64,000 bases of DNA, taken from Trichosphaerium sp. ATCC 40318. Taxonomy: Eukaryota > Protista > Tubulinea. The notes below the pieces were generated by a model that was given only the letters and a program-made list of their open reading frames with translations, had not been told where the DNA came from and made no database searches. Numbering within the stretch: position 1 is the first letter of the stretch; every line of letters begins with the position of its first letter. The translations under genes were made by a program, and so were the position numbers. Location: the NCBI GenBank assembly GCA_038496445.1, contig JALMLS010000105.1:31379-95378 (forward strand), written 5' to 3'. Of the stretch, positions 1,783 to 50,230 are shown one piece after another.

Positions 1783-4131
1783 TCTTAATTATAATACTCA
1801 CAGCAGGTACAATTCTACATGAAATATTTTTCCGCCCGTTGCCACCAGACAGCGTCATTGATGAATACAATGGTAACTGACCAATAAAACAAGGTGTTGT
1901 TGTATCGCAAGATTGGGCAGTAGATTTCCGCGTACCAGGCGTAGATATAGCAGTCGACAACAATATGGACAGTTTCCCCGACTTTCAAGAGAGAAACTCA
2001 AATGCTTTAAATATCACCGGTAAGAACAAAGAATAAGCCTCAAAACCTTTCTTTTTTAGAGATGCAACTAAAAACCTAATACCACATACACCATAAATAT
2101 TTGTAGTTGCACACCTATTTCCATATTAGTATTTTGTACCCGCATATGGATGAATTAGATTTAAAGCCAAAAAAACCTTACTAAACAACCTACATAGATG
2201 GTAATCTTGTTGTATTTGCCTACGACGCAGTTGTTGATACAAACCCTATAAAGTATGTACTGTGCGACTATTTTTCGAACTTCAAAAATCTAGTCTCTAT
2301 GGTGACCTAAATCTGTTTGTTTCTGATAAAAACGCCTAAGGCGTCTACCCCTTTTTGTGGATAATTTTTTTCAAACAATTTCAAAAGTCTCGCGTCATTT
2401 ATCACTCATTTTTTTGTTTAGCAACTTTACAGAATCATTTCGTGTATGTGCCAGAGCCAGAGACTCCTCCGATTGTGGCAGTAATTCCGCAGCTAGTTCT
2501 ACTTATGTAAGGTTTAAATCTGTGATTATTCAGTACTGATTTGTTTAAAACTAAAGGTAACATGGAACTACGATGGCACAGATATATACCAAACTATTAT
2601 TTCAATCAAACGCAACTGTACCTTGACAGATACATACAATGTACAGATTATAGATGCTTGTCAACTACAGCCAAACTCAGACGTAGGAGTTATTATAGCA
2701 GAGAACCTAGTAGTATCCGTGGACGGATATATAGACTACTGTGTACGCCAAACAGTTTTCAAACAACTTAACAGAAAAAAAAACAAAGAAAAAAAAGAGA
2801 AAGCTAACTTCATCTTGTAGGCTAATTTCTATCCTTCTTTGGGTGATGTGGATTTCCATGTACTAACAGATGGATCCTCAGGATCTACGTCTGGCAGTGT
2901 ATCGTAAGTATACAGACAAAGAAGACCGTACAATGAAGTGGCTTACGTCTTTTTAGTTGCCCATTTGTACCAGGCAATCACCAATTGCGTGCCTCAATCT
3001 CAGGAAGAGGAGCTGGTTCCGTTGGTTTATTTACTTACTTCAACGTTGAATTCAACGCCACCATGGATCCTTATGTACCATACACACCTCCTCCAACAAC
3101 AGCACCTCCTACTACTTCAGCTCCTACTACAACGGCACCAACGACACAACCGCCAACAACTCAGCCACCAACGACAGAAGCACCAACAACAGCTCCACCT
3201 ACTACTGAAGCTCCAACAACCCAACCGCCAACGACAGAAGCTCCAACAACAGCTGCTCCAACAGCTCCACCAACTACTGAAGCGCCAACAACGCTTCCGC
3301 CAACTACAGCAACACCTACTACTACAGCACCAACGACAGAACCTCCAACAACTCAACCGCCAACGACTGAAGCACCAACAACAGCTCCACCTACAACAGA
3401 GGCTCCAACAACACCTCCACCTACTACTGAAGCTCCAACAACAGCTCCACCGACGACTGAAGCACCAACAACAACACCACCTACGACTGAAGCTCCTTTT
3501 GCAACAGATTGCCCAGGTGTACAGCCAACGCCCACTACTTCATGTCGTCTTGGTACATGGACGTATGAGCCAGAGCCTAGAACAGTAACAGCGAACATAA
3601 TTCTCCCAAAAGACCTTTTAGTAGAGGGTACGCAACCAGATTAAAGCTTCGAATGCTGTTTTTTTTGAATTGTCTAGTTTGACGACTTACTCGGTTTTTC
3701 TAGGTAATTTGACTCTGAGTGGAAGTTCTTCTATTACTATAAATAATCCAGAAACACAAATTATTGTAGAAGGGTGTCTTGATCTTCAATCTGAAGTTCT
3801 AAGAATCAAGCAAGCTAACACAGCCATTCCTGTTGATGACCTCGAGGTTATTATCCAGTGGAAGGGATTATGTGTTGTTAAAGTCACAAAAGCGATACTA
3901 GAGAGACCTAATGAAGAATGTGTTTCATCACCAGTGCCTTTAGGTATGTACAAGAAGCACATGTCTCGCTTTTTTATTGCAACTGTTTTTGCTAATTTTT
4001 TTTTCCTTTCAGCCAACATCCTCAAGATTGTTTGGAGTAAGGATGATTGTTCGCCAAGATCGCCTGCTATGAGGTTGAATGTTGTGAACGTATGGCTATT
4101 GCTAATTGTGTTTATTGCATTGATACGTTGA
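1783..4131 (+). CDS. Secreted/surface glycoprotein with Pro/Thr mucin-like stalk and hydrophobic C-terminus (possible GPI anchor)
   Basis: N-terminal MHWLLIIILTA signal-like segment, many short introns, PTTEAPTT repeats in ORF 2985-3644, C-terminus VVNVWLLLIVFIALIR*. Confidence 0.7.
3086..3495 (+). repeat. Coding tandem repeat (PPTTEAPTT[A/Q/T])n, ~30-nt unit
   Basis: Visible in the sequence and ORF translation. Confidence 0.9.
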
Positions 4132-4703: not shown

Positions 4704-7700
4704 CTAATCCTTAGTTTGCATAGATTGCTGCTTTTTAAGTGCCTAAGAAACAAAGCAGTCAGCAAAACATGTACGAATAGGACAAACAAATATTTGGGTT
4801 TAAGAACATACAGCAGCACCAAGGGATGCCATCAAACCTGCAGGAGGTACAGCCATATTGGTTTGTACGCTGGCTTGGACTGGTGTTGATTCTTCAGAAG
4901 CTTCAGAAGTCTTTGTACTGACTTCACTGCGTTCAATCTCACCGTTGGCAATCTTCTCTTCACGTTCTAAAAACAATACAATCAACAAAACAACACTCTT
5001 TTAAGACTATTCAATGATACCTTTATGAAGTTTATCAGCTGGGTTTCCAGTTGTAGGTGGTCTTTTGTTTTCTTGTGTCAAGGCTCTGCTCTTATCTGTA
5101 AGTTTTGGTGTTCCAGGTAGGAGAGTAGAGCCATCCATATCGAGATCTGAGACGAGAGATTGAGAGTGTGAAAGTGGTGTTGGTTCTGCTCCGTCGTCTT
5201 GTTTTCTACACGAAAAAATTTAAGTATCAATGATGCAACAATGCAAAACGTACGGTTCTTCGCTTGCTTCAGGAGCAGCTTCGCCTTCATTTGCTTCTTC
5301 TACAGCTGGTTCTTCCTCAACCTTTTCAGGTTCTTCAGCTTTATCGTTTTCGGCTTCATCGGCTGCTTTGGCTTCATCCTCAGCTTTTTGGGCTTCCTCA
5401 GCTGCTTTAGCTTCTTCTTCAGCCTTTTTAGCTTCCTCGGCTGCTTTTTCTTCTTCTGCCTTTTTGGCGGCCTCCTCTTCAGCTTTTTTAGCTTCCTCAG
5501 CTGCTTTGGCTTCTTCCTCTGCCTTTTTGGCGGCCTCCTCTTCAGCTTTTTTGGCTTCTTCAGCTGCTTTGGCTTCTTCGGCTTTTTTGGCCTCCTCTTC
5601 AGCTTTTTTGGCTTCTTCAGCTACTTTAGCTTCTTCAGCCTTTTTAGCTTCCTCAGCTGCTTTTTCTTCTTCTGCCTTTTTGGCGGCCTCCTCTTCAGCT
5701 TTTTGGGCTTCCTCAGCTGCCTTAGCTTCGGCTGCTTTAGCCTCTTCTTCAGCTTTCTTAGCTTCCTCAGCTGCCTTAGCTTCTTCCTCTGCCTTTTTGG
5801 CTTCTTCATCAACTGCATCATCATTGGTAGGGGCAGCAGCACCAGGTAGCGCAACAGTAAATGGGCTTCCTGCAACGTGGTGGCCAGATATGACCAAAGA
5901 CACGGTATATACAGCTAGAAACAGTGTCAGATACAACCAAAAAAAAAAAAATCAAATTGTTGCTGAGGCTATTACGCACCAACAGCAGGAGGAGTGTACT
6001 CGATATCAAATGACGAGTTCTCATTATCAAAAACTTCAGCTTCAACAGCACCATCTGGGCCAGTAATAGTAACAGATACATCATCAGTGGTTATACCAGT
6101 TCTCTTTGATCCCTAGATTGTACGAATTAGTTTACAACAAAGCAAAAGAGATACCGTACGTCTTTATTCTCGCAGTACACAGTGAACAGAGCAAACTCTC
6201 CAGCAGCTAAGCGTTCACCTTCTAATCCCTTACCAGTGACACGGTCTCCATAAGGAGAGTCATTGCCAGTAGATGGCGCTGGTGTATCAACTTTAGCAGG
6301 GGCATCTTCGGCAGGTGCAACTTCTGCTTTAGGTTCTGGTTCTGGCTCAGCAACTGGCGTTTCTTCAACAGGTTCTGGTTCAGGTTTTGCTTCAACAGGC
6401 TCAGGTTCTGGTGTTGGTTCCTCTTTGACTGGTTTTGGTTCTGGTTCTGGCTCTGGCTCAGGCTCTGATGGTCTTGGTTGAATGGCAGGCGCTATTAATG
6501 GTGTGCCTGTAGGTGTGGATACAGGTGTTTGCCCCAATTTGATTGTCCAAGGTGAACCTTGTACACGCTTGCCTTTAATTGTGGCTTTAATTACATAAGT
6601 ACCTAATCTGTATTAGCGGTTTTCATTGCTACTATTAAAAATATGCGATTGCTTTAAAGCCACACTGCATGAAAACTTACCAGGCACCATTGGTGTCCAT
6701 TCAACATCGTATGTGCAGTCCTCATTATCAAACCACTCCAACTCAGGTTGACCAGGTCCTGTTACTTCCAATACAACTCTGTCTTCAGGGATGAGGCATG
6801 CATTGCCCTAAAACAAAAAGTGTTTGTTTCAAGAACGCCATAATAAAAAAGTTGTTCGACAAAACAAAAACGTTTTTTCTTATTTACCTCAATATCGAAT
6901 GTGTAAATAGTAAAGATACCAAAGTCTCCCAACACCATCTTTGACGCATCAAGTCCTTTACCTGAAGCCTTACACGGACCAACAGGAAGAATGAGCTCTT
7001 GCTCAACATGGGCGCGAATGGCTGCTTCTTCTTTGAGTTGCTTCTTTTGAAGTGCAATGCGAGCCAATCTTTCTTTTTCTTCCCTTTCTTCGCGAGCAAC
7101 ACGTGCCAATCTCTCTTCTTCGGCAATGCGTTTACGCTCAGCTTCCTCTGTACATCATATAAGTAAAGAATACACAACAAAGAGCACTGTACCGCGAAGC
7201 CACTTTTCTCTCTTTTCACGCAACTCAACATCTCTGGAATCCTCAACCTTTCGGACTGGTTTTGGTTCATCTTTGGAGGAAGCAGCGGCTGGTTTCTTTC
7301 CTTTGAGCATAGCCATACGCTCTTTTAAGGACATACCACCGCGCTTGCGTTCAGCTTGCAAGGCTTTAGCTTCAGCATCTAACTTTTCTTTTGCTTCACG
7401 TTGGGTAGCATTGTTTGCTAACTTCAACTTTTTCTTTTCTTCAGCTAAACGTTGGAGACGCTCTTCATCAGCTTTCTTCTCGCGCTCTAAGCGCGCTTGT
7501 CTGCTAGCCTCAGCTTGTGCTTTCTTCTCTTTCTCAGCTAAGTACAATGTTAGCTAAGTCATCCAATACAACCTGCTTTCGTTCTCCGAATGTACCTTTT
7601 AACCAAGCTTCACGTTTTGCTTTGAGCTCGTCATCCCTGGTGTCAACTGATTTTGTTGCTGCGCCAGCTGGGAGAGCTATAAAAAAGAGGTGTTAACACG

Positions 7701-12518: not shown

Positions 12519-13766
12519 ATGCAAGGAGGCTACCCAGGACAACCAAAACGAGGAGGATACCCACCACAACAGGGCGGTTACCCGCCACAACAAGGAGGTT
12601 ACCCACCACAACAGGGCGGTTACCCACCACAGCAGGGCGGCTACCCTCCACAACAAGGAGGATACCCACCACAACAAGGAGGTTACCCACCGCAACAGGG
12701 CGGCTACCCACCGCAACAAGGAGGTTACCCACCACAACAACAACGTCCAGGAGGTTTACAAACGGCTCAGTCAACTCAGCTGACTGGTTGGGTATATTTT
12801 TAACTCAACTGCAATTTACTCGCTAATTCGCACTAGTATGCGCAATACTACCAACAAATTCCACCTCAGCAATTGCAACAGCTTCGTAGTTGGTTTGCTG
12901 GTATGGACAGAGACAGGTTCGTTAGCTTTTGTGCTGTTGAGCACTAAACGCGGTTTATAGATCTGGAAGTATCACCTCAACAGAATTAGCGAACGTGCAG
13001 GTAATAATTCTAAACATGATCGTTTTTAAACTTAATTTTGCTTTAGTTTGGCCAAAGACCACTAGGAGCACCAGCCGCAAAGAGTGCGGACAAGATCAAA
13101 TCAATTTGACAAATTAACTGATTTTCTCTAGAACTCGTAAAGGTTTTCGACAAAGATCACTCAGGTATGTAGTAATCGTCTAAACTTCAAATCTATTGTT
13201 TACATTTCCTTTTAGGAACCATCGATTTTAAAGAATACGCTGCCTTGCATCAATTTATTACTACCATGCAAAACGCCTTCTTTCATGCTGATGGCGATAG
13301 AAGGTACGCGTAGAACCCTCACAGAACGAAATTCATAAAACACAAAACTCTAAATAACGCTTAAGCGGTACATTGGACGCACGCGAGATTCATACTGCTT
13401 TGGTTGCTGCTAGCTTCCAATTGAGCCTACCAACAGTACAAGCGATTTGTAAAAAGTTTGGTAAAAAGCCAGCCGGAGGCCGTAGAGGTCAACGTCCTGC
13501 CCCTGCTGGACTCACTTTCCCAGACTTTATCATGTGTTGTGCTCACCTTGCTCACGTCCGTAGTATCTTCGAGGTACCGTTAACTTTTTTTTTTATTCAC
13601 GTGCTTACGCTGTTATTTAGTGGAATGATACACAACGACAAGGCCGTGTCACCTTTACTTACGATCAACTCAGCCACGTCTCAAGTACGAATTTTTTTTC
13701 TTTTTAAGAAATTTGTGTTTTATTTTTTTACTTTTTTTGTATTTGTCCTTATAAGCTTTTAGCTGA
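12519..13766 (+). CDS. Penta-EF-hand protein (peflin/ALG-2-like) with GGYPPQQ N-terminal repeats
   Basis: [18 protein letters not shown] and [17 protein letters not shown]-hands across introns; Gly/Pro/Tyr/Gln-rich N-terminus. Confidence 0.85.
12553..12743 (+). repeat. 21-nt coding tandem repeat (GGYPPQQ) x9
   Basis: Visible directly. Confidence 0.95.
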
Positions 13767-36535: not shown

Positions 36536-39500
36536 TTAAGCTGTGCCCTCTTCCTTGGCCTCTGACGCTGCAGCTTCAGCAACAGCATTACGCAAGCCAG
36601 CTGCAACTTCATTCTTTATTTGAAGACCAAACTGTAACATGTTGAGACCAGCCGTCTATTTAAAAAGTGTGAGAATACTTGCGTGTTGTGTGGCCAAAAC
36701 AAACTGAACGTACTTGATTTTGCATATTCTCAATGTCCAAGTGTTCTTGAGTGTTGTCCAGTTGCACAGTGGCAGTCTCGTTTTCACGCGCAGCACGTGC
36801 GGCTTCTCGTTCTTGTTGTAGCTGCTCAGCCTTACGCTTCTTCTCATCTTCCTCTGCTTGCTTTTTGCGGCGCTCTTCTTCTTCAGCGGCAATGCGTCGC
36901 TGTTCTTCTTCCTCTCTGAGCTTGCGTGCTTTCTCTTCGCGCTCCAACGCCATTTTTTTCTCAATCTCCTCGCGTTCTTTTTCGCGCTGTTTGTTCTGTT
37001 CTGCACGTTTGGTGAATTCATTCCAAGCAGGATTCGCTGTAGTGTCTGTTGCTGTGGAAGGCGCAGGCTCTTCCTTTGGCGTAGTTTGTCCAAGAATCGA
37101 CCATGACGAAGGATTTGCAATCTCAACTTTTTCTGGAGCAGCGGCACTCTCATCTATTATTTTAGGGGCTTCAGGTACGGACTCCAAAGGATTAGGCGGT
37201 TTGACATCAGTCATGACAGTGTCTTCTTGCATTGCATTTTCATGTGTGACGCCATTCGCTGTGTTTGGTAGTGCTCCGCCAGTGATGGGTTCAGGTTTAA
37301 CATCAACGTCCATACTGTCGAGAGCTGGTTCTACTTTCATGGCGGTTGGCTCTGTATTCTCAGTCTTTACACTTGACATGGTCATGGACGGTGTGGCTGC
37401 AGGTCCTCCTACCTCTGTATCAGAGGCAGACCCAGAAGACGATGAAGAAGAGTCTGAAGAATCCTCATCCGAAGAAGAGGACGAATCATCACCACGTGAC
37501 TTTTTCTTGTGATGTTTTCGTTTAGATTTACTTGGAGCGGCACGCTGTAGCAAAAAAAAATGAGCGACATTTTAATTGGCTAAAAAAGCAGAAAATAATT
37601 GCGTGCATAGCGCAATACGTACTGGTTGGTTGTTAGGAGTGCTCTTGATCTGTACAGAAGGTGGTTGTGTTGTAGGTGGTGCTGGTGTAGGTTCCCTGGC
37701 AGAGGCAGGGCGATGGCGTGCACAATTCTTAACATAGACCTCCAAGCGACGCAAACATTGCGCTGACATTTTGTCAATATCCAATTTGAGAGATCCAACA
37801 TCAAACTAACAAGAAAATGTGAGTCGACCACGTAAAGGGAATACAACCAAAACGGAAATAAAGACAAGAGGGGGGATATACGTACAGTCAACTCTTCAGG
37901 ATGCTCCTCTTCAATTAATAGTACAACACCTAGATGATGGTCGGCGTATTGAAGCCCATTAACGGCCTAAAAACGCATATTTAGAATTTTTGACAGTACT
38001 ACAACCACAAACGAACAAAACAAAAAAAAAACTTGTCGTACCTGAGATAAAGCCAATTTTTCATCGTAGGTTAAAGCTTCAGGATCTGTTCGCTTCTTTG
38101 GTAGATGTGGTATGTCTGGTTGAGCCTCGACAGGTGGCCTGGCCAAACCTTGCTTCTTTAACATTTGTAAATCAGCCTCGCTCCGTTTCACAGTTTCAAC
38201 GAGATCTAACAAGTCACTGCCAACATCAGGCGTATAAGCGCCTTGAGGGTCTTGCATAAGGAAGCTGTCGTCACCAGATTGGTTCATCTTGACTTGTTCT
38301 TGCAATTCACGATAAGATGCTTCAAACTGTTTGCCCAATCTGACGGCTGAGGTGTGAATCGCTGTCCCTTTGTCGTTGAATTTCTTTGCATTACTCCAAA
38401 CCAATCTAACTGCTGCTGCGAATTCTCTCAATGACTTGAATTTTTGAGCTTCGATATTTTTCTAACAACAAACTATCAATACATTGACGCACTATAAGAA
38501 ACAAAGAAAAAAAACTAGCCAATTTGAATAAACAAAATGTCAAAATGTCAAAATGTGATTATATATTGTTGACTAGATTGAAGCCGCGACCCAGCAATAG
38601 AATATGAATAGAGCAATTAATTACCTTTACGCTACCAAGATCCATAGGCTTCTTAATGAGCTTAGGATATGAAGGAATGCCCAAGGCTACAGGATCAACC
38701 GGTTGATTGAATGGCCAAGACTCTCGCTTTTCCATGAGGTTAACTACAACCTGCCACGCCAATTGCCATTGGTGTGGCAGTGGTGGTGCATTGGTCGTCA
38801 TATCTCGCGAACGGGACATACTGTTCCTGGTCCTAGACGAAACATTTGGGATGGTGTTGACACCAAGCTAAAACAAATATACCTTGAGCGTTTTCTAATC
38901 ATTGGAGTGCTAGGGGCGGCCAATACAGGTTTTAGTTTTCTACCTCGACCTACTTGCTGGGCCACTTGCACACGCCCTCGACCACGGCCACGGCTGTTTG
39001 ATGTCACTTTGCCACGACCCTAAAACACAGCGTCAATACCGTACTACTTAGACATTCATCACACCAATCTCTCGATGTGACAAATAAAAAAAACAATTTG
39101 AAGCGTCTAATGTATTTTTTTGTCGAAGGGAGGGCGATACATAATTTTTTTTAATTATTTGAAAAAGCACCCAAGCAAGGAAACGAAGAATTCTACAAAA
39201 CCAAAAAAAAATTATTAATTCAATTTCTGGAAAACAAAATTGTTTAAATAGGGTTATAGTGTATACATAGTGCGCTTTTTAAAAGAACAGGTTGCTCCGT
39301 ACTCTGCCCCGTGAAGGTGCCACTGGAGGAGTCGTTGCATAGGCGCGTACAGGTTCTTTGGACCTACTCAAGGCGTTTTGTAACATTGCAAGTTCCTTTT
39401 CAATGTCGCTTATCTCTCCTTGCAGCTCTGTTCGTTGTTTTTTTGGTGCAGGTACCGCTGATGGGTCGTCCGCTTTTCGCTGACAATAAGTTATTACACG

Positions 39501-45717: not shown

Positions 45718-48700
45718 ATGTTAACGCGATTGGTGTCTAGACACCGCCAGGTGCATTCTCGGGTACAGGACTTGCGCTGCCCGTCAGCTAGAGGTGCCTA
45801 CAATTTTTTTTTTCTAAATTTCGCATTTTTTACGCTTTCAGCGCTTCAAGCGGTGTTTTCTATGCGTAAGCGCTCCATTACTGCTTGTAAGCGGTATTTT
45901 CTCAAAAATTGTTTCTGTAGCTGTAGTCAAGAACAAATCGCAGCCAATTAGTATTCGTGGGGTTAGATTTAAGATGCAGTCGGCTTGGCACACCAGTGAC
46001 GCGGATTACAAGGGTGTACGCAAATTCCCGTGTAAAAAAAAATACTGAGACGTACACTGTACAGATCGACGCTCTAGCAGAGCAAAATGCGAAGCAAAAG
46101 CTTGAAGAACAAATACAAAATCTCGCGCCTGTCAGTGATGACGAAGTGACAAGTCGCCTTGCTGCCAGCACGCTCATTGGACACCAGCACAAAGAGGGCC
46201 TTTTTATGTTTGAACTATTTTGTTCAGTACCAGGTGGCATAGACCAAGCTTGGGATCTGTACGACAAGGAGACTGATGCACAGCAAGCTCAAGACATGGT
46301 ACGTCGTGGTTTTCCTAAAATGACAAATCGGTGATTCGATTGGACTTGTCATTTTGTATCTTGTATTTACATCTCAAATTTAGTTACGACAAATATTTAG
46401 CTTGTGTACTGCCCAGGAAGACTTGGAGAACCTAAAACGGTATGGAATTGACTGGCTGGCTTTTGTTGAATTAGAGCGGACATTGAGTACTGAATTGTTA
46501 CATGTAGATGCTTGATTGCCATTCGTGATAGAAACGTCGATTTAAGTTTGCTCAAAGCTGCTTTGAATCCAGAACTTGACCTTGATGTATCTGGATTATT
46601 GCCACTTTGGGCCAAGTTCTTGCTTCAAGCCGCACATGATCCAAACCAAAACGAGATTCTTACACGTGCTTACCAAGATTTTGTTAAAGAGAGTATCCCT
46701 CTACAGTACGTTACAACATGCTTGTTTTTCGGTTTTGCAGCTATATAAGACTGATGTATGTGGTGTACTATAGGAGCGAAGAAATTAAATTTACAGAAGA
46801 TATGATGAACATGACAGAGCAAGAGAGGAAGTTGGAGGAAAAAATAAACAGTGCCGCTGCGGTGATACAGAGGGAGCTAAAAGAAGATGGTGATGATATT
46901 GACATTGAACTCGTTAAAAGGGAATTGCGTTTAGAGACTGAAGCATTAGCAAAGGCAACAGCCAAGTATCACAAAGCAGCAGACCAAATCACCAAGTTAG
47001 GTATGTTCAACTATCCAAGAAAAACATACAGTCTGAACTGTGATCGTTCTCATGTGGTATAATTCTATAGGTAAGGGAGCGGAGCAATCAACAGTTCGTG
47101 CTCTTGTAGCGCAATGGCATGGACCAGGTAAGCTTAAACGATTGGATGATTAATATTTCTTTTATTTATTTTAACAACGTGGTTTTTAGTATCGACTAGA
47201 ATCCGACAGGCAACAGGCTTCAGACCACCTAATGCAAAATTAAGCAAGTCAGAACAACCTTTAGAATACTATCTTGGTCAATCTGAACGCATCTTGCGAG
47301 AGCTAGATCCTGAACGTTTGGCGACAATGGCTTTGCACGAGGTTTTGGGTGCATGTCTAAAAAGCAAAGAGGGTGCTTCTGTACGCACAATCTGCAGTCT
47401 GATTGGTGATGCTATCGAGGCTGAATTGCGTTGGGAGAGTATAGCAAAAGAAAACAGGTAGGCATTTGTGCTAGTTGCTCTCTCCTTCATCATCACACGC
47501 ACATTCATCTAAATTTGAATAGGCCATTGTTGTTACAGCAGCTATACAAGGCAAAACAACCTAGAAAAATAAACAAATTCGCAGAGCGTACTGGGTTGTC
47601 TCAGGTGGAACTGGAGAAAACAGACAAAATTAAGGTAGATGCCACCACCCAAATTTAAGTGTTTCTATTGCTAAGAGACGTGTAGATTGGCGCATTCCTA
47701 GTTGGTGCAATTACAGATCAATGCAGAGTACAAACAGACCCAAAGTATAACTACGGTGCAGATGATGACGTGACTCCTGATGGTGTCCGTGCATTTAGCA
47801 TCACTGGTGCAATCAAATCGAAGATACCTGGCACAAGCAAGTTCAAGTCGACCAAATTCATCAGAGCACATCCTACACTGTTTCATCAAGTGGATATGTC
47901 ACATGCTATGAGGGTAAGAACGTCAATCTCGGGACAGAACTATGTCTATAACGCGATGCTTATCTGTTTGCTATGGCTAACTTTTATACTTTCATAGGAG
48001 ACCGTGTGGGCCAGATTATATCCAATGATCGCTCCACCAAAGAGATGGAAAGGTGCCAAAGTGGTATGTGACATAATAATTTGATGATTATTGTTTGAAG
48101 AAATGAGAAAATCTTTTTGCTTCTGTTAAAGTCAGTGATATAATGGTTTTTTACTAGGGCGGCTACTACATGAGATCGAGTGATTTGATTCGGTTTGAAT
48201 CATACACTTACCAAATGAGTCCTTTGTTTGAGATCGAGGACACTTTTGATGACTACTACCAAGCGCTTGATGTCTTGGGCCGTACAGCCTGGGTCATGAA
48301 CCAAAAAGTATACTCTGTTATATGTCAAGCATGGGAGATGGGTGGAGAGATTGCGGAGCTGCCTAGCAGACGGGATATTGAACTTCCAAAGCTAGATACG
48401 CCTGCTACCAAAGAGGACTATTATAAGCTCAGAAAGGTCATGCAAAAGAACAATGAACTCCATTCCTTGAGATGCGATCTACTTCTCAAACTGGGTACGT
48501 TAAAAAAGATAGTTGCTGTCTGCATCAAATTAAGTACTTATCACGTGATATAGCAATGACAGAACGATTTAAAGATGATGTGTTGTACTTCCCGCACAAC
48601 ATGGACTTTAGGGGCCGTGTTTATCCGTTGTCACCTCACTTGAATCACATGGGTGCCGATATCAACCGTGGCATGCTAAAGTTCAAAAAAAAGAAACCGC

Positions 48701-50230
48701 TTGGCGAGCGTGGTTTTCGTTGGCTTAAAATTCACTGTGCTAATGTGTATGGTTTGGACAAGGTCTCTTTTGACGAGCGTGCTGCCTTTATAGAAGCGAA
48801 CTTAGACAGTGTTTTCGATTCTTGTGATAAGCCTCTAGATGGCGATAGATGGTGGCTTCAAGCAGGTGATCCTTGGCAATGTTTGGCTGCCTGCATAGAG
48901 CTCACAGATGCCATTCGTTCTGGCGATCCACTTACGTTTGAATCTGGCCTTCCAGTTCATCAAGGCACGTCGTCACATATTTTCTAACAATATGCTTCTT
49001 ATAGTGCGTCAATGTATTGATAGTTTGTTGTTAGAAAAATATCGAAGCTCAAAAATTCAAGTCATTGAGAGAATTCGCAGCAGCAGTCAGATTGTTTGGA
49101 GTAATGCAAAGAAATTCAACGACAAAGGGACAGCGATTCCTCAGGTGCGCCCTTTTTTACAAGCACTTTTGTACAGCAAACTGACAAGATACCTCTTCAA
49201 AGGATGATACACTGCTTCTGCAAGACCCTCAAGGCGCTTATACGCCTGATGTTGGCAGTGACTTGTTAGATCTCGTTGAAGTGAAACGGAGCGAGGCTGA
49301 AAGGAAAGATTAAAGAAGCAAGGTTTGGCCAGGCAAACTGTCGAGGCTCAGTGTGTACATGTAACATTTATTGGCGGAAGAAGGCAGATTGAGACCTACG
49401 ATGAAAAATTGGCTTTATCTCAGGTACTACAAGTGTATCAAAGTTGAGGTAGGTCACACTCATTTGTTTTAGGACAAACCTGGTATTACAGAAGAAGAGT
49501 TATACGATGCTTCGTTGTATGTTACGAGATTGACATTCGAGGCTTTAAAGGAGATGTTTCAAGGAGGTACGTGCACACCTATTGAACACTCCTTTTTTTT
49601 TGGTGGATTTCAATAACTGCTTTGCCTACGCCTGCCTCTTTGTACTGCTTTACTAATAGTGTTTGTTAGCTAAATCGACCATGGAATGGTTAGGTAAGAG
49701 CGCTCGCGTTATTGCGAAACAGAACCGTTGCGTTAGTTGGCTGACGCCACTTGGTCTGAAAGTGACACAACCATATTCCAAGTACGCTCACTCCTTCTCT
49801 TTTTTAACGAGCACTAACGTCTTTCTTTTACAGAGCTCGGCGAAGGGACAGAGTTAATACTTGTTTACAGTCTTTTACGTTACTGAAGGAGACAGATTTG
49901 CCTATTCACACTCACAAACACAAATCCGCTTTTCCTCCAAATTTTGTTCACAGCTTGGATTCCTCACACATGATGCTCACAGCCCTTCAATGCGATGCTG
50001 AAGGCATTACTTATGCGAGTGTACACGATTCTTACTGGACACATGCAGCTGATGTTGATCGCATGAGCACAATTTTAAGAGACAAGTTTGTCGATCTACA
50101 CAAACGTCCTATCCTAGAAGACCTACGAAACTATTGGCAAACAGAAGAAGGCATAGTCTTAGATCCTGTACCGGATCTGGGCGGTTTCGACATTAACGTT
50201 GTAAAGGAAAGTGAGTATTTTTTCAATTAA
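45718..50230 (+). CDS. POLRMT: Mitochondrial T3/T7-type RNA polymerase (motif A-B region disrupted at 48996-49434)
   Basis: FPHNMDFRGRVYP, PWQCLA, LPVHQ, WLTPLGL, AFPPNFVHSLD, VHDSYWTH, YFFN*. Confidence 0.93.
48996..49434 (+). repeat. Inverted mosaic copy of bromodomain-gene segment 38030-38500
   Basis: Long near-identical reverse-complement blocks, including bromodomain-gene intron sequence. Confidence 0.9.

Follow-up and report, generated by a model that had tools for sequence, protein, structure and literature searches.

The locus considered here raises the question of whether an amoeba has overwritten the catalytic core of its mitochondrial RNA polymerase gene with a copy of a neighbouring gene, or whether the printed bases describe something else. 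Taken at face value, the sequence would leave an aerobic amoeba, which does possess a mitochondrial genome, with no catalytic core in its sole mitochondrial RNA polymerase, a startling claim that the following analysis finds unwarranted. The window, which is the whole stretch of DNA analysed (64,000 nt), covers contig C209 (95 kb) from its interior to its end; the assembly, from an intron-rich eukaryote, amounts to 70 Mb in 642 contigs.

A phage-type mitochondrial RNA polymerase gene (POLRMT) lies at approximately 46.0-50.23 kb on the plus strand, and its exons are colinear with the PF00940 profile and with many homologues. These comparisons were run exon by exon, not on a joined spliced model. 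Searching the assembly with PF00940 gave matches at one locus, covering profile positions 1-95 (E 2e-36) and positions 216-282 and 265-370 (E 2e-41), and positions 96-215 had no match within it. In addition to the profile match, the last exon carries motif C (VHDSYWTH) and ...SEYFFN, as expected of a single-subunit RNA polymerase. The intact parts of the gene around the affected region are as follows.

48544-48964, plus strand: POLRMT exon running to ...GLPVHQ and one further base (phase 1), the start of the polymerase domain (PF00940 positions 1-95).
48965-49004, plus strand: GC-AG intron of 40 nt (GCACGT ... branch TTCTAAC ... TATAG), by direct reading and alignment.
49435-49566, plus strand: remainder of a POLRMT intron, which ends at 49472, followed by an undamaged exon, DKPGITEEELYDASLYVTRLTFEALKEMFQG, by homologue alignments.
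49669-50230, plus strand: intact downstream POLRMT exons with FPPNFVHSLDSSH, motif C (HDSYWTH) and the C-terminal YFFN (PF00940 positions 216-370, E 2e-41).

The exon ending in LPVHQ is 58-62% identical to its homologues, and the conserved POLRMT exons outside the affected region hold no frameshift. The branch site of the GC-AG intron, TTCTAAC, is at 48983-48989, and the other introns of the gene start with GTACGT or GTACGC. The metagenomic relatives are intronless in this region and have no bearing on the support for intron positions. Among the other polymerases compared, the 1006-aa POLRMT model of the moth Mythimna separata (P0203) repeats its motif C segment (NFIHSLDSSHMMLTGL...VHDCFWTH) about ten times in tandem, probably through an assembly or annotation artefact in that genome.

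In every homologue examined, DG[ST]CNG.QHY follows directly after LPVHQ. No motif A with its catalytic Asp follows LPVHQ in this gene; the 40-nt intron is found there instead, and then sequence derived from a bromodomain gene. Motif B (RK..KQTVMT.VYGVT), which holds the catalytic Lys and Tyr, is broken: its MT.VYG segment is printed as EAQCVH, while QTV and VTFIGGRRQIE remain in register.

The foreign sequence has a single identifiable source. Positions 48993-49434 of the plus strand form a colinear match to the reverse complement of 38031-38503, with identity at approximately 302 of 442 nt distributed in exact runs. This bears out the first-pass annotation, which had described an inverted mosaic copy of the bromodomain gene including its intron. 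Self-comparison of the 95-kb contig identified this inverted similarity as its sole dispersed repeat. The source and the blocks derived from it are listed below.

38031-38503, minus strand: source, a complete BET-type exon (38042-38461) flanked by 42 nt of the preceding intron and 11 nt of the following one, frame intact.
48993-49138, plus strand: bromodomain block 1, the 42 nt of BET intron followed by the opening 104 nt of the exon (source 38503-38357).
49219-49300, plus strand: bromodomain block 2, from source 38256-38172, lacking 3 nt of it (ACT).
49310-49350, plus strand: bromodomain blocks 3 and 4 (25 and 13 nt), split by two single-base changes.
49394-49434, plus strand: bromodomain block 5, the end of the BET exon (30 nt) with the 5' splice site and 11 intronic nt, ending at the right junction.

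The source exon is 420 nt long and begins and ends in phase 0; its product comprises a bromodomain's C-terminal half, which matches PF00439 (E 1.5e-7), a linker and the first part of an ET domain. It belongs to a BET-like neighbour on the minus strand (window positions 36600-38900), with an intron-split bromodomain, an ET domain and a long acidic and Lys-rich tail. Because this gene and POLRMT lie on opposite strands, the inverted copy is sense-oriented inside POLRMT, and it carries both splice sites of the BET exon. Exact runs against the source measure 92 nt (48996-49087), 45 nt (49094-49138), 62 nt (49219-49280), 20 nt (49281-49300), 25 nt (49310-49334), 13 nt (49338-49350) and 34 nt (49394-49427), followed by 49429-49434. 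Block 1, the translation of which gives a weak PF00439 match, departs from the source in a T>C change (49088) and a 1-nt deletion, and block 5 has one mismatch (GTACGAC>GTACTAC). Small changes aside, several of them in agreement with polymerase sequence, the blocks are identical to their source, so there has been no time for decay.

The two outer junctions differ. On the left, TG.TTCTTATAG is common to the POLRMT and BET introns, and the last 9-12 nt of the 40-nt intron also occur in the BET intron; given the branch site just upstream, the native 3' splice site must lie near this junction. On the right, the string CAGGTACnACAAGT is, on its letters, most simply read as entirely bromodomain-derived with one mismatch. 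The microhomology previously proposed at both junctions is seen at the left one and stays hypothetical at the right.

Between the bromodomain blocks lie pieces of the polymerase itself, as follows (with the length of source sequence that each replaces).

49139-49218, plus strand: piece 1, CCT CAG (PQ), a 58-nt intron and GAT GAT ACA..., 80 nt in place of 100 nt of source.
49301-49309, plus strand: piece 2, part of LKGKI (CTG AAA GGA AAG ATT, 49297-49311), 9 nt in place of 10.
49335-49337, plus strand: piece 3, two single-base changes that turn source CCACCT into CAAACT, 3 nt in place of 3.
49351-49393, plus strand: piece 4, ..CVH VTFIGGRRQIE, the end of motif B, 43 nt in place of 49, by HMM and tblastn.

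The intron of piece 1 (49145-49202) is well formed (GTGCGC...CTGAC...AAG), and the text after it is probably DVYTA minus one base, a string found in homologue P0016. In piece 2, LKGK[VI] is a conserved homologue motif upstream of KQTVMT, and its CTG codon (49297-49299) sits within block 2, where it is identical to the source. A reading of 49301-49309 as 'RK.IK' was rejected, LKGKI being the product of the other frame. Piece 3 shows mixing at the level of single bases, as the CAAACT change yields CAA ACT GTC, the QTV of motif B (49334-49342), in an otherwise exact 41-nt bromodomain stretch; by a rough estimate, two random substitutions would give an in-register QTV with a chance of about 2e-6. 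In piece 4, VTFIGGRRQIE occupies 49361-49393, and several homologues align their motif B to 49325-49411, colinear with the rest of the gene. All the polymerase pieces that the first-pass annotation had placed in expected order (PQ, intron and D; GKI; QTV; VTFIGGRRQIE) are present, with one correction: the 'VY' read before VTF is not there, the sequence being CVH where VYG is expected.

Colinearity extends to spacing as well as order. Measured against 229 homologues, the pieces stand in native order at nearly native distances, and the lengths replaced are nearly equal to those of the source (80/100, 9/10, 3/3 and 43/49 nt). The interval from YAA to PQ/DVY is 20 residues in 225 of the 229 homologues; here the distance from the end of the GCAGCAGCA run (Ala-Ala-Ala) of the BET exon to the end of CCT CAG is 59 nt against 60 expected. 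From Q to V(TF) there are 27 nt, which equals the 9-residue spacing of 227 of the 229 homologues, and from GK to Q there are 31 nt against 27 expected (9 residues in 119 homologues). At least four small indels occur in the 440 nt of the mosaic against none in the other conserved POLRMT exons; the small changes counted were VYG to CVH, DVY probably without one base, and the 1-nt and 3-nt bromodomain deletions.

A second polymerase gene or a stray motif A-B exon was also sought elsewhere. A profile search, named beforehand as a check, detected no second PF00940 locus in the 70-Mb assembly, which thus contains no other gene of this polymerase family, and a search with a full homologue as query detected no motif A-B exon elsewhere in the assembly. 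The degenerate pattern DG[ST]CNG.QHY returned two DGSCQGIQNY-like matches, on contigs C164 and C262, which were set aside as chance matches antisense to a surface-protein ORF. Outside the assembly, POLRMT DNA or RNA of the same species was sought, and nothing closer than 64% identity emerged from these searches: the best match was 61% in a protein homologue search with the exon, 63% among protein representatives and 64% in a metagenome scan, and an exact look-up of the exon product gave none. A profile made from a fungal homologue and the window exons gave no protein of the species among the matches listed, where its own protein of 374-1190 aa with LPVHQ and the last exons would score >500 bits and a partial fragment could fall outside the matches listed. 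A long homologue joined with all the N-terminal exons produced 7 matches, none of them from this species.

Mitochondrial transcription requires a phage-type RNA polymerase outside the jakobids. Since this is the sole polymerase locus and a mitochondrial genome is present, the cells should possess a functional motif A-B sequence, and the simplest place for it is the other population of reads at the POLRMT locus itself. The mitochondrial genome is represented by a COX1 match, the sole one in the assembly (C309:3755-4807), which contains 20 stops or frameshifts (9 TGA, 4 TAG and 7 TAA).

The reading preferred here, at a probability of roughly 0.78 and judged from the assembled letters, is that no single real molecule carries the printed ~440 bases, which would instead be a consensus drawn from the alignment of two kinds of read. 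Reads of the first kind (A) would carry the ordinary polymerase with motif A, the 58-nt intron and motif B, in the order LPVHQ, intron, DG(S/T)CNG...PQ, intron, DVY...LKGK..RK..KQTVMT.VYGVTFIGGRRQIE. In reads of the second kind (B), the two exons concerned would be exchanged for the BET exon, copied in inverted form, lying in sense orientation and bringing its own splice sites. The POLRMT flanks of A and B would be identical, and reads of both kinds would have been aligned together through the part in which they differ. Chance matches (GCAGCA, CCTCAG, TTAAA and C.A.CTGTC) would then act as anchors, with the consensus path alternating between A and B, and the mixing would take place in the consensus step of long-read assembly or polishing. 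Under this account, an intact motif A-B sequence would be present in the organism.

Consensus building from long reads with common flanks yields mosaics of this kind, and a de Bruijn assembler could not. We know of no biological process that aligns two unrelated sequences base by base. The region shows what such a blend would leave behind, namely colinearity with both parents, replacement by equal lengths and single-base mixing at chance anchors. Furthermore, the assembly is only partly collapsed: C164:135962-138991 and C262:492-3521 share 97% identity across 3 kb, differ by SNPs and frame-shifting small indels, and are a haplotig or a very recent duplicate. Paired haplotypes or young duplicates are therefore present and liable to be merged. 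A consensus artefact had already been proposed from the letters, and the colinear parents, near-equal lengths, single-base mixing and clustered indels support it strongly, by argument and not by proof.

One feature sits awkwardly with a consensus blend. Once the predicted introns are spliced out, the reading frame is almost open. It runs from LPVHQ to the end of block 1, where the T>C change at 49088 abolishes a TAG and the 1-nt deletion shifts the frame into that of the bromodomain. It is kept over the 58-nt intron and is undisturbed by the 3-nt deletion; piece 4 and the last junction conserve it too, and it stays open between LKKQG and the following exon. A lone -1 shift, at the 9-for-10 replacement of 49301-49309, leads to a TAA stop at 49311-49313. 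By rough estimates, the two frame-opening changes have a probability of ~0.1 by chance and the whole pattern ~0.01, judged after the fact. The near-open frame thus, oddly, counts against a blend, as a random blend need not give one, and it leaves a small probability on a real chimeric gene. Such a gene would express a 'dead polymerase' in which an insert of bromodomain origin stood where motifs A-B should be, the -1 shift being a homopolymer error. We consider this very improbable, given that the TAA stands as printed, that the motif A Asp and the motif B Lys and Tyr would be lost from the only polymerase of its kind, and that a base-level mix with polymerase codons would be left unexplained.

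A physically real mosaic could also have been made by one MMBIR/FoSTeS-type repair event with about ten template switches, inactivating this copy, perhaps as a heterozygous null. The nearby, inverted donor is typical of templated insertions, and short strings are common to both sequences at several switch points (CCTCAG, TTAAA) as well as at the left junction (TG.TTCTTATAG). However, template switching supplies no cause for colinear resumption in both templates or for equal-length replacement, tracts of 3 nt and 9 nt are not easily copied, and an intact template should yield clean pieces, yet VYG is garbled; the sole polymerase gene would, moreover, be dead despite a working mitochondrial genome. 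An origin of this type is considered very improbable. If it were correct, about ten colinear switches between unrelated templates would constitute a kind of rearrangement undescribed for known mechanisms. Patchy ectopic gene conversion of short POLRMT tracts by the BET exon, which the first-pass annotation had kept as a fallback, would account for tracts nearly identical to a neighbouring donor. Conversion needs homology between donor and recipient, however, and these genes are unrelated (PF00439 versus PF00940): the non-matching pieces score barely above shuffles against the BET source, since 20 of 500 shuffled sequences do as well. Conversion would moreover call for colinear tracts of as little as 13-25 nt, with others of 3-9 nt, and this route is judged exceedingly improbable.

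Returning to the blend of two read populations, the nature of kind B is a separate matter. The consensus is about two-thirds bromodomain and switches at each anchor, which suggests that A and B were of similar weight. Roughly even odds are given to B being a real heterozygous or duplicated null allele as against an in-vitro or single-read chimera that served as a partly polished backbone. As a real allele, B could have arisen when replication switched template twice across 10.5 kb, guided by microhomology, with TG.TTCTTATAG as the site of the left switch. An unmixed BET copy would be a null allele because of a TAG in the frame set by the phase-1 exon. That this underlying variant alone is real, as a heterozygous allele with a BET exon replacing both catalytic POLRMT exons in sense, is possible at somewhat less than an even chance. 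A check for a microhomology-type insertion found TG.TTCTTATAG shared at the left outer junction; the approximately ten inner switches are colinear, with equal-length replacement, which the mechanism does not predict. A fold-back axis was also considered and discarded, as any inverted pair has one and no other symmetric similarity was found around 43.7 kb.

Other repeats were noted in the same contig. An inverted repeat pair near the contig start (C209:672-982 and 2721-3005 in contig coordinates) is 94-95% identical with its copies ~1.7 kb apart, possibly representing the ends of a mobile element. The window also contains diverged tandem repeat arrays at 3090-3500, 5350-5810 and 12540-12740, with units 75-90% identical.

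The locus matters in several ways. Gene models and protein sets derived from this contig will hold a false, truncated POLRMT. It also provides a worked example of a consensus blend that can be recognised from sequence, through two-parent colinearity, equal-length replacement and base-level mixing. If the variant allele behind read kind B were real, it would represent DNA-level exon shuffling caught at its origin, and a small example of exon replacement through template switching near splice-site motifs.

Compared with the POLRMT family, this gene is colinear in its N-terminal polymerase part, motif B remnant, motif C and YFFN, and differs in that motif A is missing and motif B broken as printed. 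Fold-back and multiple-displacement-amplification chimeras resemble the locus in joining inverted segments within ~10 kb, often through microhomology. Such chimeric reads had been named as the likeliest source of the artefact, but they normally have one junction, which is unique to the read, and do not usually return after a 440-nt island or contribute two-thirds of a consensus. FoSTeS/MMBIR events share with it the 473-nt inverted copy from 10.5 kb away, the similar length replaced and the 9-11-nt string shared at the left junction; they account for two junctions, not for about ten colinear switches. A further likeness is to the haplotype-switched consensus of collapsed long-read assemblies, which partial-order-alignment or column-vote polishing produces across a heterozygous structural variant. 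There too the flanks are identical and the sequence alternates at common bases, both versions stay in register over equal replaced lengths, and small indels are locally clustered.
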